Positions 27,300-64,000 of a DNA stretch of 64,000 nt are shown piece after piece (the first letter of the stretch is position 1; every line of letters begins with the position of its first letter). Source of the DNA: Botryllus schlosseri (Eukaryota); assembly GCA_051294905.1 (NCBI GenBank), contig CM119378.1, positions 24,490,001-24,554,000 of the forward strand, in the 5' to 3' direction. The notes under the pieces are model-generated. The model saw nothing but the letters and a program-made list of their open reading frames with translations, was not told the DNA's origin and did no database searches. The position numbers were made by a program, and so were the translations under genes.

Positions 27300-30200
27300 A
27301 TCAAGCAACGCCAATCCCCTCGGTGGTATTTTAAAAGAAAGTGGCGATTGACCATGGTTTGGAGAAATCCTGTCGGCCACTGGTCGACTTGACATGTGGA
27401 AATTGTGCGAATCGAAGTACAACAACAATGATTCAAGATCAGATGCCAATAAACATGGAAGTTTGTATGAAACAGCAACACCTTAGTAACGGTTTGAATG
27501 GTGCCATGATGGTAGAAAGCCGGCCATAATGGGATATCTGGTTGACCAGCCCAAACCATGCACGTATATCTGCTATTTTTGTTGGCCGTGGGAAGCACTG
27601 TATTGCTTCTAAATATTTGGGCAGAGGGCGAACATTCTCAGCAGTAGTGTCGAATCGAAGCCGGCGAACTCGATGTGTCTGCGGCAGAACTGGAACTTGG
27701 AGGCGTTTAGGATGATACCTTCACGGCTCATTAATTCTAGCTAGTCAATCATTCGCCACCAGTGCGTGGCAAGGTCAGAGGACCGTGTCGTCCACGCACT
27801 TCGTTTTACATGGTGTGTCGGCAATGATGCTGTCGTAGCGGTAAGCGTACCCGTCGCCACTGGCCAGGTATCCCTGCGGGGCCACTCTATACCGATATAT
27901 CCCGAACTCAGTGATAAATGTCAGAAGGTCTATCCTCTTCACGCACGGGCACGAAATGGTAACCATTCCAGGCATCTGTGACAGACCTGTAAGTGTTTGG
28001 AGGAATCGAGCGTGCTTGTCTGAAAGGAGGCACAACATGGTGTGTTTCTCTAGAGCAGAAGCGGTTCAGCGATTGGAAGTCAACAACTCTCCTCGGCCTG
28101 CCATCTCTGCCTTGCGGACCGATATGGCCCTATGACACCAGGTTGTTGGCGTGTTCGGCTCCACGTTTTCAATCACCCTAATTTTACGTCCGCCTCCAAC
28201 TGCTTCTAAATTTCCTCTTTCCAATGAAGTGGAATGGGAGCCGGTGTGTGGACTGCCGTCGGTGTCGCCGACGGATCGATATGAATGGAAATAGGAAGCC
28301 CAGTCATGGTTGGCAGTGGGCTGTGTTTGCACTTGTTGAATGTGGATGATGCATACCTCTCAAGTAACCACTGCTTCGTTTTATCACCATTCTCCGCACA
28401 AGGCTGGATTAGCAGTTGCTGGGGGCGTGGAGGAGGGGTTGACCTCTGTGGGCAGCTACATGTTTGATGCGGGTTACCCTCAAGGGTTGACTCTCGTGTC
28501 GCGTGGAGTGCGGCTGCCCCAATTTGGGGAAATTCGGGCCCAATGACGCCCAACTTCTGCATGGCATCTCGACTAGGGTAGAAGAGTTTGGTAGAATCCG
28601 TAATGTATACCATCTCAGCGGTTTCTATGACATCATCAGAAACTGCTGCACCCGAAAGTCTCAGAAACACAGCGCCCAGGATGTGAATACACTCATCATT
28701 AGCTGCAACCATGCGTTTCTTCACCGGGATGAGACGCTGGTCTTTAAAGCCGCATGCTCGAAACAGTCAATCCCATCAAGGATGATTGTGCACCAGTGTC
28801 CGATATCGCCTTCATCTTCTTGGGCGTTATTTTGGGACGCTGGATATTGAACCTGGCATAATCGGCTTGCCGGGTGGAGACCGGGTGGAGACCAAAAGAT
28901 CAATGGTCGGTTGTGACTTGCAGTCTTTCAGCAACCAACCAACCGTATGTGCCATCGAATATGTATATGTGGTGGTCCCATATGACATCCGAAGCATGAG
29001 ATTCGACAGTGTTATTGGTACGGTTTGATACTGAAGCGATATTAATACTAGAAGCGGTGCCAGTACTAGGCGTCTCCGATTGTTTGCTTTGTCTCCAGCA
29101 GGCTAGACATTGTTCAAACTCGCGCAACCTCGGCCTACCAAACTTCCCATGCAAGAATTCATACTTCTTCATGACATTGCCACATTTGACGACTTGAGAG
29201 AGACCGGGCAAAGGCGTGCAAGTAGAAGTGCTGGCCGCAACGCTAGATTCATGCTGATTTCTCATTGTGGAGGAGGTGGCACGTAGAGCCAATTCCTTGT
29301 TTTCAATAATCTGGACAGTTTCGTCTAGCGATTTTGCATCGAGATTTGCAACACTAAGGACTTGCCGCTGAACCTCATCATCAGCCAGGCCAGCGATGAC
29401 AATGTGCTTAACAATTCTATCAGAAAAGTCATTGACTTGGGTGCAGTCAGGCATCGTGCAATTCATTTGAAACGAGCAAATTTTTGCAGACGCTTTCACC
29501 TCGGCTAGAAATGCACTGAAGGATTGTCCTTGATCCTGCTGGGCCGAAAATAGAGCAACGGTGCGCAATGCGCATGCTTGTGGCGATTTTGACAACTGCT
29601 AGAGATCCAATAGCTTTTAGCATATCACCTTCACTGACTTGTTTGAAGAGTTCGTTCGATAAAGTTATCTCACAGCATTGCCACAAGTGGCTCCTGATTA
29701 GATTGTCGGGAATCTCGGTCCCTTTTTTATAATCGCCCCATTTTCTGAGGAAGATTTGCCATTCCTCAGCAGTGGAGCCACGCGAAATGACGGGTCGTTC
29801 CATGACAGGTAGTCTCGAACGCGAGACAGGAGGACCTGTTGTGTGGCTCGTAGCATGGGTTGAGAGCTGTACGACGGCGCCGGTCGCATCTTCGGTTTCA
29901 GTCTCATAATTGCAGACTTGGAGTGGGCAAGAAAGCTTCGGCATTGTTAATCCGTATTAAGTTTGATCATGTGCAACTTTGCATTTATTCATAGGTTAAA
30001 TACCGTAATAAATGATCAAACTGAAATACAAAAGAACAGTTGCATCGACTAGCCTAATCCCTATTGCTCTAACAACTCACAAGACGTGGGTGCTAATCAG
30101 TGATGAGCGGATAGTGCTTTTCGAGACTCCGAATCTCTCCGACAACTTTATGTCTGAGGAAAACTCCCTCCGACTCCGAAGAGCTCAATCCCAGACTCCG

Positions 30201-30675
30201 AGATACTCCGAAGAATCTCGTCAAGTATCCGAAACATTGGCAAGCATGGTACACATGGCCTCATAGTATTGTTTACTCTCCAGTCCCCAATTACAGTGCA
30301 GATGGCTGATTTTTACGCACTTGGCAATCATTTTTGCATGTTACCCGTCATATTACAACTTTATAAGGTGTCAACTGTCTGTGTGTTGGTTTGCAATCAT
30401 AATCAATAGTGTATTCTGGTCAGAGCTATCCAAAGATATCGGAGACAAAAGGTACAATACTCCTAAAAATATCTGTAGTAAACTCCGACTCCGCTCCGAC
30501 TGTCACAAAATCGGCAAAACTCCGCTCCGAATCCACTCCGACTCCGCTCCGATGCTCATCACTGGTGCTAATACATACTTGCACACACGTCGCACAATCA
30601 CAAGAAGACGAGATCGCTCATGCGTTTAGGGAAACTATTAGAGAGAGAGATAGTAGCAAGAGATAATATCACACA
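27300..30675 (-). mobile_element. Degenerate Ty3/Gypsy: 5' LTR (split by a hAT MITE), gag, protease region, RT, RNase H start
   Basis: gag ORFs 29447-29944 and 28900-29595. RT remnants FITEFGIYRYRVAPQGYLASGDGY..KCVDDTVL, then GIILNASKFQFC..IEFAGF and WFGLVNQ. LTR ~30675-29970 reads TGTG...GCACA (~230 bp without the MITE). No 3' LTR found. Confidence 0.85.
30098..30564 (-). mobile_element. hAT MITE, deletion derivative of the 42751-45080 family
   Basis: TIR CAGTGATGAGC/GCTCATCACTG. Perfect TSD GTGCTAAT. Both ends match 42751-45080 in reverse. ctccga repeats. Confidence 0.92.
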
Positions 30676-34546: not shown

Positions 34547-34956
34547 ACCGACATTTCATTGTAATTTCGAAGTCAACACATTATTGGGATTTTGTTTGTT
34601 GGTACTGGTGCTTGGAAATGCGACCAGAAACTGCTAAAAGTGAGGAAAATTGATATATTTATAAATGCGAACCATTCAATATCACCAAACAGAGTTAAAA
34701 AAAGTGGGTTTAGGAAGACTTCAACTGGAAACTGATGAGTCCGAGTCCAAGTCATTGTGTTGACTGATCAGTTTCCAGTTGAAGTCTTCCTAAACCCACT
34801 TTTTTAAACTCTGTTTGGTGATATTGAATGGTTCGCATTTATAAATATATCAATTTTCCTCACTTTTAGCAGTTTCTGGTCGCATTTCCAAGCACCAGTA
34901 CCAACAAACAAAATCCCAATAATGTGTTGACTTCGAAATTACAATGAAATGTCGGT
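34547..34956. repeat. 190-bp near-perfect inverted duplication with a 30-bp spacer
   Basis: 34547-34736 is the reverse complement of 34767-34956, with one visible mismatch. Confidence 0.95.
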
Positions 34957-36264: not shown

Positions 36265-37485
36265 TCAAGTTGCGTAGAAATGTATTATTCGGCTTGATTC
36301 CTTCACTCCTGTCCGATATCCACCATCGACTGTGCTAAATCTAGTACGGTGCATCGCCTCGCCCGCGAACAGAACTCTTGGCCTTCCGTTGACAGCAAGC
36401 GGGGCGGAGACGAGGCGTCTGTCATGCCTTCTTTGCCCGACCGGAATATAACTGTATGATCCCAAAAAGTTTTCATTCTCATGCCATCTCGTTACGAGGA
36501 CATCGTCTGGGTCGGGGATGGCGGTGTTTCGCAGAATTCTTCGTAGTAGAAAGGCTAAACGCACTCCAATTTCCGAGTCTGAGAGATCGGACACGGCTTC
36601 GGAAGAATACGCGTTCATCCAAAAAAGAATTGAATGGTTTGAGATATGCTGGATACTATAGAGATGCCGGAACCAATGTAAATCCGCTTTGTATTCACCT
36701 CTCCATGTATTTGAATTCCACAAAATAAAATTGAAGCAGGTATCGTTCTCCCAAAAGCCATGCTGATAATAAAGAAATACTTTATTCACCGTACCCATGC
36801 CCATCCTACCCAATGCCATCTTTTTGTGGTTTGGTAACTGCGGGATGAACATTGAGTGATGGTATTTTTGTAGTACTCCCAGTGATACAGTAACGATTAC
36901 GTGGTCGGCGTAAATTCTTTCCACAACGTTGTCGGCATCAATGCTTTCCACTAAAATGTGGTTGAGGTCTAGTTCCCGATCGGTCACATCTTGATTTTCC
37001 GATTCTCTGTCCCAGTGAATTCCGGTCACTTTTTTACCTAGTTTAACGACAGATGCTGGCATATCCTTCACTAAATACGAAATTAGCGACTTCGAATAAC
37101 CGGCAGGTATCGTGTAGTCGTGTCCATGTTCTTCAAAATAGTAATCCTCAAGAACGCTAACGTTTTGCGTAAGTTGACCTGCCATTATGGACCATATATT
37201 GTCGATGAAATTAAAAGTTGCGTCTGCGAGCGATTCGTCCAATAGACAGTTATTTTTCGGTAGAACTTTGTCCCACACTTTCCTCCCTGCTTCATTAATA
37301 GTTAATTGCCGGGGAACTAAAGGGTGTCTATCCGAGTAGCTATCCAGTTTCTGAATTGTTTCCTGTAGGCACAGGAGAAGACTTCTCTGGGTAGCTGCAT
37401 CTATCTTTATCCCGTTACTCGTATAGAAAACATCACCAGCAATGGTTCTCTTGGCCTTAACAACCTCGCTTTGTTTCGAAATGAT
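36265..37485 (-). CDS. Flavin amine oxidase (spermine/polyamine oxidase-like), large 3' exon (406 aa + stop)
   Basis: Acceptor ttcttAG|ATC at 37485 is in frame with ORF 36265-37278. Motifs DHVIVTVSLGVLQ, FIPQLP..K..GMGTVNKVFL..FW, TRWHENENFLGSYSY, VLFAGEA..FSTVDG..TGVKESSRI. Confidence 0.9.
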   Translation of the reverse strand: MISKQSEVVKAKRTIAGDVFYTSNGIKIDAATQRSLLLCLQETIQKLDSYSDRHPLVPRQLTINEAGRKVWDKVLPKNNCLLDESLADATFNFIDNIWSIMAGQLTQNVSVLEDYYFEEHGHDYTIPAGYSKSLISYLVKDMPASVVKLGKKVTGIHWDRESENQDVTDRELDLNHILVESIDADNVVERIYADHVIVTVSLGVLQKYHHSMFIPQLPNHKKMALGRMGMGTVNKVFLYYQHGFWENDTCFNFILWNSNTWRGEYKADLHWFRHLYSIQHISNHSILFWMNAYSSEAVSDLSDSEIGVRLAFLLRRILRNTAIPDPDDVLVTRWHENENFLGSYSYIPVGQRRHDRRLVSAPLAVNGRPRVLFAGEAMHRTRFSTVDGGYRTGVKESSRIIHFYAT

Positions 37486-42750: not shown

Positions 42751-45080
42751 CAGTGATGAGCACCGGAGCGGAGTCGGAGTGGAGTCGGAGCGGAGTTTTG
42801 CTAATTTTGTGATACCCGGAGTGGAGTAGGAGTTTACAACAGATATTTTTCCGGAGTTTTACGGAGTATTGTTAGTTTTGCCCCCGATATCTTTCGATAG
42901 CTTTGACCAGAAGACACTATTGATTACAAACCAAAACACAGACAGTTGACACCTTGTGACACCTTGTAAAGTTGTAATATGACCGGTAACATGCAAAAAT
43001 GATTGACAAGTGCATAAAAATCAGCCATCTGCACTGCAATTGGGGACTGGAGAGTAACCTAGTGATCTAGCAAGGCATTTCCGCTGAGCAGTGTCTGTAG
43101 TTCACAAACTTGATAACACCCAATATCGTTCGCATATCATTTTCTCCCTGCAATGAGATGCAGTCTTTGAATCCACTGCTGAATGTCACCATATTATGAG
43201 ATAAGATCTCCAGAATCTTCCATGTTGCTGTCATTGCAGTCTTCTATAGTCACATCATATTCCTCCTTGCGTATTTGTTTCGTGACTAATTTTCATGCCA
43301 CCCCAGTAATTGTGCGAAACATTTACAATCAGCAACATACAGCGGGGCTTCCCTATGGTACAGCCTTTGGCTACCCTGATTCTTCCAGCAAGTTGATGAT
43401 CATAACGGAATATATCCCATTATCCTGATGACATTCAATATAGTAATAGGTAATTTTGTGAAAATGTATTCCCAACGTTGGTATCAGTTGAAACAAGATA
43501 ATATCCGATACCACTTTTGTGATAACTTTTCGCAACTTTCATCGTACTTGCAGTTTGCAGTGAGAGATATCGATAATAAGTGTTACATCAATATTACCTT
43601 TATATCTGTGAGAAATATACATACAACAAGCAAGTATCTGGATGGAAACAATAATAACTTATGCAATGTGTTACATGATTTAATGACATTGCGACGAATT
43701 TTCGCTAGTAAGATCCGCTCACAGAGGCATACCAGCATCTAAGCCCGCTTTAAAGATTTCAACAATACATAAATCACAAAGGTCAGCTGATCTTACCCTG
43801 TAAAAACAGAATATTCCGAATTTCTGAACAGCCACACTAAATAACTACAACCGTCTGCTTTGCTCTGCTCGCATCAACTCAACTACGCTTCCTTCAATAT
43901 TGATTGACGTAGTCAGTCATCCAGAACTCTTCTGAATTTTCGTCATGTAATGTTTGGTTTGATTGAGACATGACTTTGATGTGATATGAAAAATCAGCAC
44001 CGCAATCAAGTTTCTGCTGCTGGTCTGTCTCAGACTACAAATTCCAGATATCATGTATCAGCTTCAAAATTGGAAGTCACTAGTCATTTAGTCAACTTCA
44101 AGAAGCGTCGATCGGTGCGTCAGTGATGCATCATGTATGTTTAGTGCAGTGCAGTTCCATCAACTGTTTCATGGCGATGCGGAACTTAATTTACTGAAAC
44201 CTGTGATGTGATCGTCGATTTCAGTGGTGTTAGTGGTAGTTAGTTCGAACTGACTGGTCTTCCTTCGTCGTTTTAATATAATGGCTGAAGCACCGTCGAC
44301 GTCAAGTGGGTTACTCACTAAGACGCAGAAAAAGTGTGACGTGTGGAAGGATTTCACTCTGATGCTGCATGATAATAACGGCCAGTATACTGGGTTTGCG
44401 AGATGTCAAAACTGCAATATTCAGCTAAAGCATCACAAGTTGACAAGTGGTACGTCGCATCTTCGAAGACATATCGAAGCTTGTAAGAAGAATTGATCGC
44501 AGTTGAAATGCAAGTAAGCGAGTAATCAAAGGAGAAGGTGATCATGGGGAACACTGATCGCCGCTCGCCGGGTGGAGAATACCGAAGAAGTGCCGGTTTG
44601 CCGTGGTGTTGTGCAGAAGACGTTTTGCCATCCAGATTTACGGTGAAACGTAAGTTCGATGAGGAGGCTTCATCTTTGAAGCAGAAGCTGTCAGAGGAAC
44701 TAAGAGTTGCTATCAACAGTATCAAGTGTTATGGGCTGGCTGGCATCACCACAGATATGTGGACCGATCTAAAGGGTCGCAGTTCTATTAGCTTGACTGT
44801 CCATTTTGTTGGAGAGAACTTGACTCTCAGAAGTAATGTTGCGACTGTTCGGCAATTCACGGATACTAAAAAAAACTGGTATGAATATCAGACAGGCTAT
44901 CGAAAACATCGATTGGGATTCTTCGACAATGGTCTGAATATATTTCGGGGACTGGGCAAGATTCTTCGGGTTATCTCGGAGTCTGGGATTGAGATCCCCG
45001 GAGTCGGAGGGACTTTGCCTCAGAGACCAAAGTTGTCGGAGGGACTCGGAGTCTCGAAAAGCAGACTCCGCTCATCACTG
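42751..45080 (+). mobile_element. Ac-type hAT element, internally deleted, with BED finger and transposase N-terminal half
   Basis: TIR CAGTGATGAGC/GCTCATCACTG. Perfect TSD ACTACTAC. 44281-44496 BED finger (VWKDF..ARCQNC..SGTSHLRRHIEAC). 44538-44880 LPSRFTV...ITTDMWT..SISLTVHF (first catalytic Asp). Confidence 0.93.
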
Positions 45081-45365
45081 ACTACTACGCTTGCGGTTCG
45101 GCAACTATAGTTTTAATTCTTGTAAGTTGTAATGCACCACGAGAACTAGAACTACTCACTTATCAAGATCTGAAATAAGAACTATACAGAATCACCGATG
45201 GCCGTAGTGACGGACGATTGGCCGAAATAACACTAACATCACAGAAATTGGCGTATGACATATGCACACGACAATTTTAACAATATTCATTTGATAAGCA
45301 TCAATTATTCTGTATTCGCGCTGCACGCAAATAGCCTTCAAGTATTTCCGTTCCTACGTGTGTAG

Positions 45366-46070: not shown

Positions 46071-46348
46071 CAGAGGTGGTCAATAACGAAGTACTTGAAG
46101 TAGTGTGATGTATTCTACGCCTATTTTTGCCTACAAAACTGTCAAGTAGAAGTAGATTTTGCCTACTCACACTACTTTAAGTAATGATTTTAGACCACTT
46201 CTACTTCTACTTGACAGTTTTGTAGGCAAAAATAGGCGTAGAATACCTACTTACTTTCTTGTAAATCATCACTCCTACTTCTACTTGAGTAGAAATTCCG
46301 GCGTTACTTTTACTCGAGTAGCGACAGTGACTACTTTGACCACCTCTG
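46071..46348. mobile_element. hAT MITE, internally palindromic
   Basis: TIR CAGAGGTGGTCAA/TTGACCACCTCTG. TSD atagtcat/gtagtcac (6/8). Internal ~45-bp inverted repeat. Confidence 0.85.
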
Positions 46349-49457: not shown

Positions 49458-50416
49458 TCTAAACTTGCTGCCGTGAGGACGCAGAAATGAAGCTGTCTAA
49501 AAACTATTGTGAATCTCTTTACAACGAACATATTCGGAGGTCTTCCACAATGGCGAGCACGCCAAATAACAAAGTCGATGCTATATCCTTGTGTGCGGAG
49601 AGCTATCTGGAGTCACGCAACAGATTCCTAGTGCTCGACACGATTTCGGATTCGGATGACTCTGGCGTTATCGGTACCGGTATGGATGGAAAAGTCAACG
49701 AGGGCTTGGCGAGATTGGACACAATTATTGAAGGTATTCCGCAGAATATGGCATACGAAGCAAAGCGTAACGCTGCGGAATTAATGACTTCGGTCACTGG
49801 GGATGTAGCCGCTCTCTACTTGCAAGTTAAAGGAATTGAATAGAAGTTGCAGCTGATGAATAGATGATTTGAAGAGAAGTTCCAGCTGATGAATAGATGA
49901 TTTGAAGATAAGCTTCAGCTTATGAGCAGTAGCATGATAGGCGACATAAGAGGTATGTTGGCAACTATGGTGAACTCGCCTAAGGTTGACGCCGACAGCA
50001 AAGGGAAATTAGGTTGTGAGGATTTGAATAGGCCCAAGGTTGCATTTGTGATAGATTCCTGTGGAGATGAGACAGCGTTTGTCCCTCCTGGCAACGGTGC
50101 TTAGTTGTCCCTCCTGGTAATGGTGCTTGAAGTAGTCCTGAAGTGATGACTGCGGGGCCGTTACCTTATGGCGCAGATAAGTTGTGAGGATTTGAATAGG
50201 CCCAAGGTTGCATTTGTGATAGATTCCTGTGGAGATGAGACGGCGTTTGTCCCTCCTGGTAATGGTGCTTTAAGTAGTCCTAAGTGATGACTGCGGGACC
50301 GGTCCCTTATGGTGCGTCTGATTGTGTTAAAATGGCCCCTGACACAATTGATGGTGCTAGCGGAACTTTTCTAGAGGAATATCTCTGTCATTTTGAATTT
50401 ACGGCTTCATGTAACC

Positions 50417-51988: not shown

Positions 51989-54587
51989 ATGTAACCAATG
52001 GAACAATGAACGTAAAAGGTTGCTACTTGGGTGCCAGTTTGCGTGTGAGTTGTCGGGTGAGGTTCGTGTGCATTGAACATTGGAGAAAGAGGTGTAAAAC
52101 TAGTTCTCATGGCTCATTGGTGTATTGTAATTCCTTCACCACTAGGAAGAACTTGCCAGGAGAGTCACCCACAGCTTTTGCTGCGGCCCTGCGAAGTCTA
52201 GCCCATAACGCGTATCCTCAAATGTCTGACCAAGTTTGTGAGCAGATGGTAATTCAGCAGTTTTGCCATGGTTTCTCAGACCCCCATGTGTGCGTGCTTT
52301 ACAGGATTCGAGCAATTTGGACGACCTCATTAAAGTTGCAGAGGTTTACGAAGGCGCTTTTTCAAGTAAAGTAGACCAGGGCAAGGTGGTCAAGTCTTTG
52401 AACAAAACTGATGATGGTTATGACTCTGATGGAAATTGTATGTCTAGTAGTGGAGTGTGTTCTGGTGTTTCTGATCTTCGCAAAGACTTGGAAACTTTCT
52501 TTGGAGGTTAAGAAACTGGTAAAATCGATGGAATCTGCCTCAGTTAACTATTCAAAACCAGAACGTCGTGTAATGCCGAAATGCTATCGGTGCGGTGATC
52601 CGTATCATTTGCTACGTAATTGTCCAGTTCCTGTTTGCGCAAGGTGCCGTGTGGCTGGCTGGTCACGGTGGCCGAGCAATGTCAATTCTAGTATCGTGCT
52701 CCGAACCAGATGTATGGCCCTGTGTTTAACCAAAATGTTCCTGCTCAACCGACCCATCAAGCTGTAAACCGATAGTAGCGGATCATTGGTCCAGTGATAA
52801 CGCGAATGAGACCAGTGCTATAGACCAATCATTGGATAGGATGTTAGAACATGATTCTCTGGTTTTTCGTTAGCTTTATCAACTAATTGGTTTGCGATGG
52901 TGAGTGTGAATGGTTTTTCGATCAAGTTTCTTATTGACACGGGTAGTGCGATTACAGTTATCGATATTTCTGTGTGGGATGGTATGCCTAACAAAGGTGA
53001 GCTGTTTCCGTATGAGAAGTCGTATAAAGTTGCCAATGGTGGATGGCTGAACGTGTTAGGTAGGTGTGAGGTGCAGATGTGCATTGAGTCTGTGTGTGTC
53101 GTCAAGGAAGTGGTTGTTGCGGAGCACGGCGCCGCTGTTGGGATTTTGGGTTATTATTTCAAAGAGTATTGATTGTGTATTGTATGAAAGAGACTGGAAG
53201 TGTTGGGACAAAGGGTCAATCTTGAAGCGTCCACTCCATCAGTACCCCGCTGTAGAATCTTTTTGGATAGTTATGTAGCTATGTCCGGGTACAGTGAGAG
53301 GATAATATTTGGTAAACTTAATGAGAGTTGGCCCCAGTTGGGTGGAATTGCAGTTAATTTTGAACCTTCGGGCAATTTCATGAGTAAATATGAGTCGAGG
53401 GGTCTGTATTTGGTCCCTGGATTGGTAGACCCAGAACTGGATAGGATACCCTTGCTGTTGGTTAATTCTGGCGGCGAGGACATTATTTTGGCAGCTGCCT
53501 TGTTACTGGGAGTTTTGTGTCCGCAAGAGGGTCAAGCCTGTGGAATTTTGCTGTCCCACATTTGTTCAGGATGTCCCTCATCATTCTGAATCCCTACCTG
53601 AGCATATGGAGTGTCTGGGAGATGATGTGGAAGGTCTCTCTGATTCCAAACTATAATCATTGCGGAACCTGATTGAATTTCAGGATGTTTTCTGTGGCCC
53701 AGATGGTCGCTTGTGTCGTACTTCTGTGATCAAGCACAATATTGTAACTTCCTCGTCTAAACCAATCAAAGTACCTTCGCGACGATTAGGCTGGGCCATC
53801 CGAAACATAATGGATGTTTCGGAGATTGATAAGATGCTTGATCAGGATGTTATTGAGCAATCGGACTCCCCATATAATACACCATTGTTGTTGGTACCTA
53901 AGAAAGATGGGTCATCTCGTGTTGTTTTGGATTTTCGAAAAGTGAACGAAGTTACAGTGAAAGATGCCTATAGTCTGCCAAGGATTGATGACATTTTGGA
54001 CTCGCTCGGTAATTCCACTTGGTTTTCTGTTTTCGATTTAGCCAGTGGTTTGAAAAGGATCGCCACAAAACTGCTTTCAGCCTTCCTGGGAGAGACCACT
54101 ACCAATTCATGGTTGTGGCTTTTGGATTGGCCAACTCACCACCTTGTTTCAAAGATTGAAGGAAAAAGTTCTTGCTGGTATTTTATACAAGAAAGCTCTG
54201 GTGCCATACTCCATATTCTGTGTAAATTTTGGTTTTTTTAAATAATTCCTTGGGCCCAAATCGGGGGGGGGGATTTTGAAATTGAACTCTTGTCATGTAG
54301 GAAAGTCTTTCTCTTCAAGGAATGCTTATGAACTCCACACAATGATTTACTTAGTTGTCTATGAACCCCTAGACCCTAGAACACGCCTGATTCTGGTATT
54401 GAGCCAAGTTTGATCAAGATTTGAGACCATTTGATACCAAAATTGCCTTCCGCAGATAAACCATACCAGTAAAAACTAAAAAGCCGAGTAAATCAACTTT
54501 GAAAATTTAAAATTGTATTCATGAAAAATTAGAACAGGTATTCGAAATGCGATGCTTTTCCAGTCATCAGACATGTTTGAATTAGGA

Positions 54588-55272: not shown

Positions 55273-55680
55273 AATTAGGATATAGCCAAATTTGACAGAG
55301 ATTGAACATCTTTAAATGCATAATAATTGATATGAAGTATGACTAGTTTCACAGTTCTCCACTCAAGAACTGCTATTCAAAATGTGAAATTTTTTGAAAT
55401 CGTGAATTGGACAAGCATAAGATCAGAGATTTTATATAGAACAGTTGAAATGACATATTTTAATCCCTGTGACACTGTCAAGATTCACCGGAGTTGTTAT
55501 GAGTGAACATATTATGGCCACCACTGGATATCTTCAAATATACAATTTCTACCACCAAATTCATGCCACAAACAAAGCATGGTGGAATAACGGTACATGG
55601 GAGAGCCCAGAGTCAAGAATGAAGTACCGATATGAATAAAATTTCCCTGCAGTGTGAGTAGTGTCGTCCTTCTTTTCAAA

Positions 55681-55826
55681 CTCTCTTTCCTTACATATAT
55701 TTTCTAATTTCCTTCGTTTTCGATTACGGGTTGTGTCAATTTGGGCGTCAGATACTCTCTTTCCTTACATATATTTTCTAATTTCCTTCGTTTTCGATTA
55801 CAGGTTGTGTCAATTTGGGCGTCAGA
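55681..55826 (+). repeat. ~73-bp tandem duplication
   Basis: ctctttccttacatatattttctaatttccttcgttttcgattac.ggttgtgtcaatttgggcgtcaga occurs twice. Confidence 0.95.
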
Positions 55827-56739: not shown

Positions 56740-58010
56740 TCCTATTGGTATAGACCTGAAAGTTGAAACCGACCACAAACCACTAGTGCCCCCGCTCTCA
56801 ACGAAATCGTTCGACGATTGAAACCGACCACAAACCACTAGTGCCCCTGCTCTCAACGAAATCGTTCGACGAACTACCTGTCAGAATTCAAAGATTCAAG
56901 ATCAGGTTGATGTCCTATAACTTTATAAGTTTTTCACGCGCCTAGAAAGTCGACGTACAGAGCAGACGCGCTATCACGATGCCCTTTGCCGACAACGGAT
57001 AGCATCGAAGATGCTCTTCACAAGGAAGCGGGAGCATGTGCGCGTGCTCTGCTTTATTAGTTATCAACTGTGAAAATTGCTCCTGTCCTGGGTGGCTCGT
57101 ATCTGAAGACTTTGTCATATCGAGCCTTCCGTCTACCTTGCATGTCGCATTTCACTGTTACATTTTTGTAGTGTAATGTTGATATGTAATGTATCCGAAT
57201 AAAGATTCTCTCTCTCTGTGTCTGGTAAGCGGGCCGTCTGCTACGCCTGGAAGAAATAAAGAACGCTCTGAAAGAAGACAAGACACTGTCGACTTATGAC
57301 ATATGTTGTCGGAGGATGGCCAAAGAACAAAGAAACTTTAAATGGGCCGTTACTTATCTTCTGGAATCTCAGGGACGTGTTAACAGTGCATGACAATCTC
57401 TTGCTAAAAAGCAACAGACTCGTCATACCACCGCCGTTGCGCGAAGATGTTCTGAAACACCTTCACCAATCGCGCCTTGGAATAACCAGGACCAGAAAAC
57501 TTGCAGCTGAAGCTTGCTGGTTGGCGGGTTATTCAAAAGACATTGAACATGCAGTACTCAACTGCATCCGCTGCGAAAGCATCGACGAGATCGAACTGAA
57601 CCAATGATGGGACCGAATTTCCGAAACGCCCATGGGCTAGTAGTGCTGCTGATGTTTTTCAACTGGAGGACAAGTAGTACTTTTTGTTCATGGATTACTA
57701 CTCCGGTGACATAGAACTGTTCTCCGTGAAGAAAACGATCTCGTCACGGGACACAATTTCTTACTTCAAGAACGTGTTCTCTCATTATGGTATCTGCGAT
57801 GTTTTACTTACGGACAATGCTTCAGTCTTCGTTTCCTCTGAATTTTCCAAGTTCTCCAGATCCTGGAATTTTCAGCACCTCAGCTCTTCTCCGAAATATA
57901 GCCAGGGCAATGGCTTCATCGAGAGAGGAGTGCAACTATAAAGGGCCTGCTCAAGAAAACAGATGATCTCTGTCTGACGTTACTGAGCTATAGGAACTTG
58001 CCCTGACACA
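56740..58010 (+). mobile_element. Ty3/Gypsy pol remnant (RNase H end, integrase zinc finger and core)
   Basis: VETDHKPLVP..RIQRFK..ADALSRCP. RLVIPPPLREDVLKHLHQSRLG..C..C. DYYS..LTDNA..FVSSEF..SSPKYSQGNGFIERGV. ~62-bp tandem duplication at 56757-56871. Confidence 0.88.
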
Positions 58011-58032: not shown

Positions 58033-58215
58033 GTTAAACCCACTCAGAGGCCAGACGCCAAACGCCGAGCGGCGGTCAAATGTCTGTACGGTGTTTGGCG
58101 TCTGTTATGTTCAGACGCCGAGTAGCTATACGGCGTTTGGCGTCTGTTATGTTGAGACACCGATTAGCTATACGTCGTTTGGCGTCTGGTATCTCGGTAA
58201 ACTGAGCAGAGGCTA
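58033..58215. mobile_element. Short palindromic MITE-like repeat
   Basis: ccagacgccaaacg/cgtttggcgtctgg inverted repeat. Internal ~43-bp tandem units. ttaa at the left end. Confidence 0.55.
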
Positions 58216-59671: not shown

Positions 59672-59732
59672 CTGAAAGAGTATATAGGCCTACACACAGT
59701 ACACTAATACAGAATATATTGACGAGACAGAA

Positions 59733-62700
59733 TGTGATGAACCAGACCAATGAACGTATGGTAGGCTTTTATTAACAATATCCCGACTAGCGCCGACACC
59801 ATAAACTAGCGATCCACACTAGGTAAAGTCAGATGCAGAAATGAATGATTACTACGCTGGCAGCACCATGATCGTTCGTGGGGCATGACAGCGCTCACGT
59901 GATACGCTATAGCGAATCCGGCAAAACACGTCAATCTCCCCCTCTGAAAATTACGGTGACATATCACAATCAAATGCAACGTGAAATACTAAATATAGCA
60001 CTGCAAAATTGTTCAACTCAGTAATGAAATCTGTCCGGCGCCATTCTGATACGAGTTGAACGTCTTAACGGCACCTCAGGGGGTTCAGATGCCGGCAGTT
60101 CTTCAGCAGTTTCGACGTTCGACCCGCTGCCCGTCTCCATCTCGACATTGATGTCATCAGTAGCGTCATCATCAGCGCCATTACTCGTAGTTTCAATAGG
60201 AGTTGTATCGACGGTCTCCGACTCCGACGGGTATCGAGCCAAATCTTTATTCGATACGGTTGTTTGTCGCCCGTCTGGATATTGGATCAACGAGTATTGA
60301 GGGTTGGCTTCGATGAGTTCAACTGGCTCGCAGATAGGTTCATCTTTTCGTCGGACATGTCGTCGCATTAGCACAGTTCCACCGTCCAAGAGCCAATCAG
60401 GCATAGATGTGCCCATGCTTGATTTACGAGGAAACTTGAATAACCTGGAATGCGGAGTCTCGTTAGTAGCGGTACATAACAACGAACGAATTGAGTGCGT
60501 CGGGAAGTACTTTTTCCCAACTGCTTTCGGGCAGCCCGCGAGAAGCAAGCATGAGCTTGATTGTACGCCAGATTGTCTGGTTTACGCGCTCGCATTGGGG
60601 GTTACCATTCGGGTGGTATGGCGTGGTTCGACTCGTCGCGATCCCTTTCTCCTTCAGAAATTGTGACACTTCGTTTCCAATGAAAGACTGTGATCGGTCA
60701 CTGTGGACGTATTCGGGAAGTCCCATTATGCTGAATAGCGACACAAATTGTGAAATCACGGTTGACGCTCGCATATCAGAACAAGGAAATACAAAAGGAA
60801 AACGACTATACTCATCAACCATGATGAGAAGGTACTGCCTTTTCCCGTCCACAGGTCCCTTGAAATCCACGCTCAATCTTTCCCAAGGTCTGGTCGCTTT
60901 GATCAACGGCGTGGCCGGAGGTTTGTAGAATTTCGGCTTTATCTGAGCGCACTCTTTACAGCGGTTGCATTGTCTCTTCACTTCTTCGACTGAAAAAGGA
61001 AGATTTTTCGAACGTACGAAATGCATTAGTCTGCGAATCCCAGGGTGACCCAAAGAGACGTGAAGTTCTTCCAAACTCAGGCCATAATCACTAGTAGCCA
61101 AACATAGTCTGGTGAAGGCATCAGCTGCTGCATTTTCCAAACCTGGTCTATGTTCGATATCGTAGGTATATTCACTCAACTCCAATCGCCACAAAGCCAA
61201 CTTGGTGTTTTTGATCTTACTCTTGTGCTGCTTGTCAAATATAAATGAAAGAGCTTGTTGGTCGGTTATTATTTTGAATCGTCTACCGTGTAGTAAATAA
61301 CCCCATTTTCTCACCGCCCCGATAATAGCACACGCTTCTTTTTCCACGGCCGGATACTTCGCCTCGGACTTGATGAGAGTTCGTGAAAGGAAGGCTACCG
61401 GTCTTCCACGCTGGCTCAGGATAGCAGCTATGGTGGTATCAGAAGCATCGGTCTCGACGGAGAATGGTTCCTCGTCCAAAATGCAACCTAAACAAGCGCG
61501 ACGGAGACAGCTCTTCAACTTATCGAAGGCTTCGACAGCCAATCCTTCAAGAGGAAAATTTTCGTTATGGAACAAAGGTTTCGCAATCTCGGAATCCACT
61601 TAGAATAGTATGCAAAGAGGCCTAGGCAGCTCTTTAAAGCTTTGGCACTCTTCGGAGGAGACAGTTCCATTAGCGGCTTCAAATGCTCAGGATCAGGCAT
61701 GATCTCACCTCTTCTTATTCGATGTCCAAGGAGCTTTAGCTCTTCTACAGAAAATGTCGATTTCTCAGAGTTGATCGTCAGATTGGCGGACTTAGCTGCT
61801 GACATGAAGGACTTCAAACGTTCGTCATGTTCCTTCTGATCCTTGCCGTAGATGGTAATATCGTCCAAATATGCGACTGCTCCTTCAAGCGCATTCTTTT
61901 CGATGAACGAATCGATAAATCTCTGAAAAGCACTAACCCCGTTAGTGACGCCAGAGGGCAACCTACGAAACTGATAAAGTGACCCGCAGGCCTCGAATGC
62001 AGTGAATGGCCTGTCAGCTCGTTCTAACGGAACCTGATGGTACGCCGACTTCAAGTCGATAGAGCTGAACACTTTGCCTTTAGCGACCTCGTTCACGACA
62101 TCTGCAATCTTCGGCAATGGGTACGCATCTAGAAAGGTAAATTGATTAATCGTTTGAGAATAATCAATGACAAGGCGCTGCTTTTGACGTCGTCCACCAG
62201 TGACTAGCACCTGTGCTCTCCACGGGGAGTTGGAATCCTCGATTATCCTTTCATCTTTCAATCGAGATCCTTTCATCTTTCAATCGAGATATCTCCTTCT
62301 TGATGAACTCCCGATCCGGAGCACTATACGATCTAGATGGAGTTGCGATAGGTTTACACGACCCATCGAGAAATTGAAATATTCTTGGCGGGGTGCCCAC
62401 TTTTGCTGCAGTCAAGTTGCAAGTGTGTTCCTCGTCTCGTCCAGGAATAACAAGGGGATTCAAGGGTCCCCCTAATTCAAATATAACTTTACGGTGCTTT
62501 TTCATAAATGATTGGCCCAAGACCACATCAGCGCATAAGTACTCGATAACACCGAACACCACATCGGAATCCGCCCGTTCAGCTCAAACGACAGATATAG
62601 CATTCCGTGAACAGTTGATCGCTTTCCTTTATCTGCTAACTTGATGCTCTTCTTTTTACCAAACCATTTGAGTTTCAGCTCCCGCGCTATCTCAAGACTC

Positions 62701-63955
62701 AAATAATTGTCTGATGCTCCGCTATCCAACAATCCATCAAACTTCTTTCGCTTGATAGCAATGATCACCGCCGCTTTCGAAAGTGAGACAGGAATTGAAG
62801 CAATCATGGCTGCTAACTCATCGGACTCTTCGTCGGATTGAACAGAATTCAAGCACATCTTGTCAAAGTGCCCTTTTTCGCCACAGTTGAAGCAGACAGC
62901 ATTCCTTGCTGGACATTTCCAGACTCGCCCGTGTCGGTTTCCACAACTAGAACATTTCTTCGCTTTCGACACGGGGTTGCGATTCCCACTTCTCCGCGAC
63001 ACGGCTAAAGAATGTCCATCAGAGTCCTCTTCGTATCGTGACTGCGACTTGGAGGGTGTGGCCTGACTAACCTTCTGGCCTTCATCGACTTCGATGGAAG
63101 CTGCCGCCTGAGGATTCATGTATATCGCCGAACACTTCTGCGCTCTCTCCAGGGAATCTGCAACTTGAACAGCTTTATCAAGAGTCAGCTGATCGAATTC
63201 CAGCAAACGCAATCGTATCGCATTGGACGACAAGCCAGCAATTAACGCATCTCTGATAGATTGTTTACGGTGATCCTCAGCTGACACAGCCTCGAACCTG
63301 CAATTCTTCGCAAGGGACATCAGTCTTTGCGAAAACTCCATGACGTTTTCTCCTGGCTGCTGAGTGCTCGTCGAGAGCGTATGTCGAGCATATATGATAT
63401 TTCTCTTCATCAAATACAGTCCCTCTAGGACTTCGATCGCTTTTTCAAAATTTTCGGCGTCGCACACATACGAGTAAACTTCGGGGGCTAGGTAACCATT
63501 CATTATTCCTCGCTTGTCCAACTGTGGACCTTGCTCAGAGCCGGGCGTAGACGAGGTTGACGCCGAAGACTGACGACGGCGATCGTCCGCGGCTTTGATA
63601 AAACTAACAAGCATATCTTTCCAATGCTTGAATACCAGTTCAGTTCCCGGAGCACTCGGCAAAACTTTTAGAGTAGGAACATGATACAATCTCTCTTCGG
63701 CAGACGCCATCTGTTTCTTACGTCTATACGCTCAGTCGGAATTTGTTAATAAAATTGTGATGAACCAGACCAATGAACTATGGTAGGCTTTTATTAACAA
63801 TATCCCGACTAGCGCCGACACCATAAACTAGCGATCCACACTAGGTAAAGTCAGATGCAGAAATGAATGATTACTGCGCTGGCAGCACCATGATCGTTCG
63901 TGGGGCATGACAGCGCTCACGTGATACGCTATAGCGAATCCGGCAAAACACGTCA
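59733..63955 (-). mobile_element. Full-length young Ty3/Gypsy LTR retrotransposon (4.2 kb) with frameshifts
   Basis: LTRs 59733-59933 and 63756-63955 (TG..CA, 1 substitution + 1 indel). TSD CAGAA. PPT agagggggagat. gag with CFNCGEKGHFDKMC, protease LLDSGAS, RT YLDD, RNase H ETDAS, integrase HHCC + VDFKGP/SDRS/CERVN. Confidence 0.97.
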
Positions 63956-64000
63956 CAGAACATGGGTGAAAGGGGTGAGAAGCAATGAGTTTCACAAACT

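Follow-up and report, generated by a model that had tools for sequence, protein, structure and literature searches.

Structure and coding content of the element

The minus strand of the window, by which we mean the whole stretch of 64,000 nucleotides analysed here (it contains no N), carries at its far end an LTR retrotransposon of Ty3/gypsy type, 4,223 bp long. The coordinates of its parts, together with those of a second, unrelated retroelement fragment in the same window, are collected in Table 1. Aligned with each other, the two LTRs differ by one substitution and one single-base indel, and the element is flanked on both sides by a 5-bp duplication of the target site. The LTR pair, the TG..CA ends and the TTCTG duplication together confirm position 63756 as a true edge of the 5' LTR. 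The polypurine tract ahead of the 3' LTR has counterparts in the relatives described below, where similar GGGG-rich tracts precede the LTR.

Pfam searches on the open reading frame pieces identified zf-CCHC, an aspartic protease, RVT_1, RT_RNaseH, Integrase_H2C2 and rve. The order protease, RT, RNase H, integrase was found both in the pieces from the window and in intact relatives, which assigns the element to Ty3/gypsy (Metaviridae). Among solved structures, the best matches to the family's pol are Ty3 Gag-Pol and Ty3 RT (7q5b, 4ol8), and for the gag piece only the zinc knuckles were matched. The gag-pol region of this copy holds four frameshifts and zero in-frame stops, and intact relatives encode a single frame of about 1,200 residues. 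Since the four frameshifts break gag-pol, the copy informs on its family and not on its own activity.

A preliminary description of the locus had called the element non-chromoviral. The chromodomain (PF00385) was absent from the open reading frame pieces of the window, from the precomputed domains of the best 120 relatives and from six relatives that were scanned, so that this status is supported in the specific sense that no chromodomain is detectable in these sequences.

Table 1. Coordinates, strand and basis of the retroelement features located in the window
Feature	Position	Strand	Basis or remark
Whole LTR retrotransposon, Ty3/gypsy gene order	59733-63955	-	LTR pair and flanks; Pfam on open reading frame pieces
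5' LTR, 200 bp, TG...CA	63756-63955	-	Alignment of the two LTRs
3' LTR, 201 bp	59733-59933	-	Alignment of the two LTRs
Target-site duplication, upstream copy, TTCTG on the element strand	63956-63960	-	
Target-site duplication, downstream copy, TTCTG	59728-59732	-	
Polypurine tract, one base upstream of the 3' LTR	59935-59945	-	Sequence reading
gag-pol: CCHC knuckle, protease, RT, RNase H, integrase	60018-63710	-	Open reading frame pieces
LTR arm, perfect 12-nt core of the proposed self-primer, 3' end at 63789	63789-63800	-	Complementarity, RNAfold, shuffles, 22 relatives
LTR arm including the imperfect helix extension	63789-63815	-	RNAfold; extension predicted in most relatives too
Putative primer-binding arm, perfect 12-nt complement of 63789-63800	63743-63754	-	Complementarity, RNAfold, shuffles
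Putative primer-binding arm including the imperfect extension	63728-63754	-	RNAfold
Single spacer base between LTR edge and primer-binding arm	63755	-	Spacer of 0-2 nt in the clade, usually A
AATAAA poly(A)-signal hexamer within the LTR arm	63790-63795	-	Sequence reading
Same 12-nt arm in the 3' LTR, without a complementary partner after the LTR	59767-59778	-	
Small inner stem-loop, from the first base after the arm onward (U5-IR-like; suggestive only)	63764-63788	-	RNAfold
Hairpin of a second, unrelated retroelement fragment, arms 30012-30022 and 29960-29970	29960-30022	-	15 nt upstream of the gag ATG at 29944
gag-like open reading frame pieces of the second element, with no pol after them in the window	28206-29944	-	

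Pairing between the LTR and the post-LTR leader

Read on the minus strand from 63955 to 63756, the 5' LTR ends in ...CATCACA. No TGG occurs between this edge and the gag ATG at 63710, a leader of 45 nt, and the element thus has no primer-binding site of the tRNA-primed kind. After one spacer base, the leader continues with the exact reverse complement of an LTR segment. This segment ends, on its 3' side, 33 nt within the LTR, and a single base (63755) separates the partner of that end, 63754, from the LTR edge. When the region 63830-63700 was folded with RNAfold, the pairing was extended to a 26-bp helix interrupted by two 1-nt bulges, with a predicted energy of -43 kcal/mol (z = -4.9) that was equalled by 0 of 200 shuffles. 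Beyond its perfect core, this helix is imperfect and includes G·U pairs as well as bulges. The preliminary description had reported the same LTR end, the lack of a TGG, the 12 perfect base pairs and their distance from the edge, and had judged the pairing extendable to about 25 bp; all of these readings agree with the sequence and with the predicted fold.

An inverted repeat of this length might arise by chance in AT-rich sequence, and the window does contain 14 perfect hairpins of at least 11 bp. A match of at least 12 bp that starts no more than 3 nt from the LTR edge, however, was obtained in only 1 of 20,000 dinucleotide shuffles of the LTR, which corresponds to a probability of about 5e-5 at the exact position, and pairing recurs with covariation at the homologous position in 22 relatives. 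This specificity and covariation rule out a chance origin, to which we assign negligible probability.

Within the loop of the hairpin, 14 of 19 relatives form an inner stem of at least 4 bp from the first loop base onward; 39 of 2000 shuffles reach that number (~p = 0.02), and other start positions score alike.

Relatives form a compact clade with the same layout

Relatives of the element are numerous. Its pol is better conserved than its gag: a pol of 796 residues encoded in a marine assembly shares 51-60% identity with the pieces from the window, and gag relatives, with Styela clava among their hosts, show identities of ~40%. A search with the 796-residue pol returned more than 1,400 proteins, most of them encoded on contigs of about 4 kb and most as single gag-pol frames, and the named hosts of the pol matches in the clade include Mytilus edulis, Armadillidium vulgare and Cyamophila willieti. 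In all, 92 loci were retrieved, and the covariation counts given below are based on 22 independent elements. Two loci with no LTR arm (L003 and L088) and one with an aberrant leader (L005) were left out of the counts. In the last of these, an otherwise intact relative, the leader is replaced by GC-rich palindromic sequence unlike that of the other members (L005:1-161), and the locus may be an assembly chimera.

In relatives that retain both LTRs, and whose LTR edge is therefore defined independently of the pairing, the layout is the same everywhere. The LTR ends in ..ACA or ..TCA and is followed by a spacer of 0-2 nt, usually A, and then by an arm that is the perfect complement, over 11-18 bp, of an LTR segment located 31-66 nt upstream. 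This LTR segment mostly ends in a hexamer resembling AATAAA or ATTAAA, followed by GCC or ACC. This start, 0-2 nt past the edge of the LTR, is shared by the arm in the window and the arms of 20 relatives whose edges are defined. For instance, a copy from Mytilus has LTRs that are 100% identical, a TCTAT duplication and a pairing of 16 bp, and a copy from Armadillidium has a GAACG duplication and a pairing of 14 bp. When upstream regions totalling 43 kb were scanned, 28 such hairpins were detected, versus 0 in 49.6 kb of sequence coding for pol. The pairing characterises a compact clade of elements, about 4 kb long with one gag-pol frame, that includes members from Styela, Mytilus and Armadillidium.

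In several relatives (L007, L012, L020, L022 and L002) the gag ATG is found 0-5 nt past the binding arm, which leaves no room for another primer site in these elements. With the start of gag at the foot of the helix, translation and helix folding may compete in the same five relatives. Two further sequence features accompany the LTR arm in the clade alignment: a near-invariant AG located 10-11 nt ahead of the arm 3' end (alignment columns 36-37; the window has TG at 63798-63799), and an RCC triplet placed directly after the arm in nearly all relatives (after alignment column 46; window 63786-63788). These conserved positions could be candidate initiator and cleavage-site contexts, respectively.

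Covariation of the two arms

Across the 22 independent elements, the post-LTR arm pairs with the LTR of its own element over a mean of 13 bp, compared with 5.3 bp for the LTRs of other elements, and the own LTR is the unique best match for the arm in 19 of the 22. When RNAalifold was applied to a MAFFT alignment built without structural input, it returned, unaided, a 13-bp helix with compensatory double changes at 10 of the 13 pairs. Direct counting gave 96.4% of cells paired, 54 double-change cells and a covariation score of 0.55 versus 0.14. These pair-count values were reached in 0 of 500 shuffles, and versions of the helix slid by 1-3 columns retained 25-50% pairing.

The pairing is almost exclusively of the Watson-Crick type. 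G·U accounts for 1 of 279 cells, and the other nine non-Watson-Crick cells are mismatches distributed over five elements, two of which (L033 and L080) are visibly decayed. Such a near-absence of G·U is expected from templated copying and not from selection on RNA folding alone. In L080, the binding arm (L080:3617-3717) fits an LTR arm of the L020 type (12 bp) better than its own LTR (7 bp); this copy may be a recombinant, may result from template switching between families or may plainly have decayed.

Similar correspondence is seen between sister copies within one genome, where one copy carries a T variant in both LTRs together with the complementary A in its binding arm, and five other loci of the family (two of them possibly the same place) carry the matched G and C. 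In copies whose LTRs are at most 95% identical, the arms have decayed. A comparison of the binding arm with the LTR across related families had been put forward in the preliminary description as a check on its proposal, and the covariation proved to be strong both among the independent relatives and between these sister copies.

These comparisons also bear on the possibility that the host supplies the primer, for instance as half of a tRNA, as a fragment from within one or as some other small RNA. Such an RNA would prime at the post-LTR arm and leave the LTR match as a secondary feature. Priming by half-tRNAs exists in Ty1/copia lineages (PMC6317226), but only about 3-7 arm bases are constant across the clade, the rest being family-specific and tracking the LTR of the same element, and a host primer is unlikely for this reason. 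Moreover, without a TGG no tRNA 3' end can pair at the site, and no Rfam family, tRNA included, matches the duplex region. A comparison with tRNAs had been suggested in the preliminary description. ARAGORN detected no tRNA with which the arm could be compared in the window or in the loci of 40 out of 41 relatives, and gave one doubtful call in the remaining one. The site itself is not tRNA-like, as it lacks a TGG and an Rfam tRNA match and differs in sequence between relatives, and we consider priming by a host RNA highly improbable.

A second retroelement fragment in the window

The preliminary description had also cited, in support of self-priming, an unrelated element at about 30 kb in the window. 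Its 11-bp inverted repeat is present, and its open reading frame pieces, which gave no Pfam matches, are homologous to the N-terminal part of RT-RNase H-integrase polyproteins of 1,000-1,650 residues. In pol, those polyproteins have no more than 22-25% identity with the first clade, and the second element (28206-30030, minus strand) is a real, gag-only fragment from a very distant RT-RH-INT lineage. In the one relative retrieved as DNA, a hairpin occupies the homologous position, some 13-15 nt ahead of the gag ATG. Each of four differences in one arm is compensated in the other arm, in this comparison of two sequences with undefined LTR edges. A scan of viral contigs found no further relatives of this second family.

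Taken alone, the hairpin at this locus is weak evidence, because the window holds 14 such hairpins where 0.8 would be expected and because no LTR pair was found here that would define an edge. The repeat itself, the distant lineage and the hairpin kept in one relative stand; the support that a gag-only fragment with an undefined edge lends to self-priming is weaker than had been implied. Upstream of the gag fragment, at about 30097-30450, part of the sequence recurs in inverted orientation at 42876-43057 and 44940-45081 with ~86% identity.

Other features of the window

Further repeats and coding fragments were noted elsewhere in the window. On the plus strand, a short RT-like fragment at 53753-54153 (RVT_1, E = 1e-6) is akin to the pol of the compact clade and is probably the remnant of another copy. 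Long perfect inverted repeats with arms of 39 bp and 37 bp and loops of 30-43 nt, resembling MITEs or foldback elements, are located at 34698-34805 and 46120-46236. Just outside the element, short tandem or near-tandem duplications occur at 58084-58209, 55680-55826, 56763-56872 and 50010-50270, with units of 42 nt (three copies), 74 nt (two copies), 55 nt (two copies) and 93 nt at a spacing of 168. The minus strand at 36268-37278 contains a long exon of a flavin amine oxidase similar to spermine oxidases. Its closest named relatives are animal proteins with 30-35% identity, a few plant polyamine oxidases score similarly further down the list, and one close match reaches 82% identity. An animal is the most likely host.

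Self-priming as the proposed role of the duplex

We interpret the duplex as the probable priming site of an LTR retrotransposon that would prime itself in the manner of Tf1, independently of tRNA, with a primer arm that overlaps the poly(A) signal. We assign this reading, which is drawn from sequence comparison, a probability of roughly 0.7. Self-priming fits the observations because of the position of the arm, the lack of another primer site and a pairing that tracks the LTR of the same element.

According to this model, the genomic RNA would begin within the 5' LTR, either at the arm or before it (63800-63815), and the arm with its AATAAA would fold back over a 34-nt loop onto the sequence that starts one base past the LTR. 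The RT/RNase H of the element would cut the RNA between 63789 and 63788, directly after the arm and beside the small stem-loop, and the freed 3'-OH would be extended over 63755-63788, giving a very short minus-strand strong-stop DNA. This DNA would transfer to the 3' LTR and pair there with the corresponding bases upstream of the poly(A) site, a stretch of 10-30 nt that follows the arm. In LTR retroelements, plus-strand synthesis copies the primer and thereby regenerates the primer-binding site; here, it would copy the self-primer back, so that the binding arm would be rewritten in each cycle as an exact Watson-Crick complement. Such copy-back would explain why the core is strictly Watson-Crick, in contrast to an outer helix that tolerates bulges and G·U.

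Some considerations count against self-priming. If transcription started downstream of 63789, the arm would be left off the 5' end of the RNA, and the first strand transfer would have only about 10-30 nt at its disposal. A TATA-like motif at a fixed distance from the arm was not found in the family. None of the contigs had a poly(A) tail downstream of pol or was otherwise recognisable as derived from RNA, and two Logan contigs are not delimited like transcripts.

With the poly(A) signal inside the arm, the helix could also act in the control of polyadenylation, either in place of priming or besides it. In such a regulatory or structural role, it would shield the promoter-proximal AATAAA from polyadenylation factors and leave the 3' copy exposed, it could also gate gag translation or packaging, and the element would be primed by another route. 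The arm of most relatives does end in an AATAAA- or ATTAAA-like hexamer, yet L008 and L010 have AATAAA or AATAAG in the loop and a poorer hexamer at the arm end. The helix can form only at the 5' end of the RNA, since one arm lies outside the LTR, and the 3' LTR copy of the arm has no partner, as this role would require. Likewise, the gag ATG at the foot of the helix and an imperfect extension with G·U well past the perfect core, which looks structural, are in keeping with regulation; it does not explain why the offset from the edge of the LTR is constant at 0-2 nt or why the core is almost free of G·U, and a helix with this function alone would leave the elements without a primer site. We therefore regard regulation without self-priming as unlikely. 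The two roles are compatible, and both may hold.

Comparison with known priming systems

The self-priming that we propose has its closest model in Tf1, in which the primer-binding site pairs with 11 nt at the 5' end of the RNA and an RNase H cut makes the primer (PMC7175516). Self-priming has also been proposed for Tf1/sushi elements in hosts that range from fungi to vertebrates (PMC4600332) and for Tcn1 of Cryptococcus (PMC7175516). Tf1 and Tf2 of Schizosaccharomyces pombe, members of Tf1/sushi, share with the clade described here the lack of a tRNA-type site and a post-LTR stretch complementary to RNA derived from the upstream LTR. The duplex measures about 11 nt in Tf1 (PMC7175516) and 11-18 nt in our clade, and a further stem-loop may sit beside it in our clade, which would be another likeness to Tf1/sushi. 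Unlike Tf1/sushi chromoviruses, our clade has no detectable chromodomain and occupies animal hosts of several phyla. It also differs from Tf1 in the overlap between arm and poly(A) signal, in a short loop of 31-66 nt and in a mechanism that is read from sequence.

Other systems resemble the clade in part. Self-priming has been predicted, from complementarity between LTR and primer-binding site, for plant chromoviruses of the Tcn1 clade and for the Ty1/copia TAR elements Houba and Osr-1 (PMC6317226); these cases lie outside fission yeast and are likewise based on complementarity, but they belong to another superfamily or clade, have plant hosts and come with no reported overlap with a poly(A) signal. 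Fungal GalEa elements of Ty1/copia have a Conserved Hairpin Site (CHS) at the place of the primer-binding site, with no tRNA match (PMC5445492). Both arms of the CHS are downstream of the LTR, conserved in sequence and partly palindromic, and its authors found no complement in the LTR (PMC5445492), whereas our clade has one arm inside the LTR and freely varying sequences.

Retroviral RNAs offer a different kind of parallel. Their U5-leader and U5-IR stems pair the LTR with the leader around the priming site, and the poly(A) hairpin of HIV-1 holds the poly(A) signal in a helix. These structures accompany a tRNA primer-binding site, whereas the helix of our clade occupies the position of that site itself.

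Among invertebrate elements, Steamer and Steamer-like elements, which are compact members of the Mag lineage in bivalves, are similar to our clade in their compact single open reading frame, LTRs of ~180 bp and marine invertebrate hosts. They carry a 12-nt TGG... site for tRNA-Leu, or a tRNA-Asn site (PMC8905726, PMC11046912), and the tRNA-Leu site present in Steamer led us to reject Steamer as the identity of the family. The Cigr-1 clade (Ciona, molluscs, annelids) is a small Ty3/gypsy clade common to tunicates and molluscs (PMC6238403, PMC8556966). It is a lead only, likened to our clade by host range, and no statement on its priming was found in the literature searched. Similarly, we found no paper on self-priming in a Ty3/gypsy clade of tunicates, molluscs or other invertebrates in that literature, which leaves aside much of the older work as well as Repbase, so that a prior description is possible.

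Implications for animal retroelements

The preliminary description had suggested self-priming in another Gypsy lineage, and both the non-tRNA-like site and the covariation support this suggestion. On the sequence evidence, the elements described here would probably add one new lineage, and probably two, to a known mechanism. So far, fission yeast is the only host in which self-priming has been demonstrated, and it has been proposed for chromoviruses and for a single copia lineage of plants. If it holds in a compact clade of tunicates, bivalves, crustaceans and insects, tRNA-independent priming would be a mainstream option for animal retroelements. Annotation pipelines that require a tRNA-type site would miss or misclassify such elements.

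A broader proposition, which we advance as a speculation with the odds against it, is that hairpin self-priming might be widespread among the Ty3/gypsy-like elements of animals, and possibly ancient, and not a peculiarity of Tf1/sushi, with two lineages represented here. In the compact clade, one short sequence would have two functions, that of a poly(A) signal in the 3' LTR and that of a primer in the 5' LTR, and copy-back would provide each subfamily with a private pair of primer and site, conferring freedom from host tRNAs and from defences directed at tRNA sites. Small-RNA defence aimed at tRNA primer sites has been described (PMC7472051), and we infer that self-primed elements would be predicted to escape it. 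The finding is also relevant to the proposal that priming by hairpins is older than priming by tRNA (PMC3601003). Under the self-priming model, the strict Watson-Crick covariation of the two arms would represent a clean natural signature of primer copy-back.
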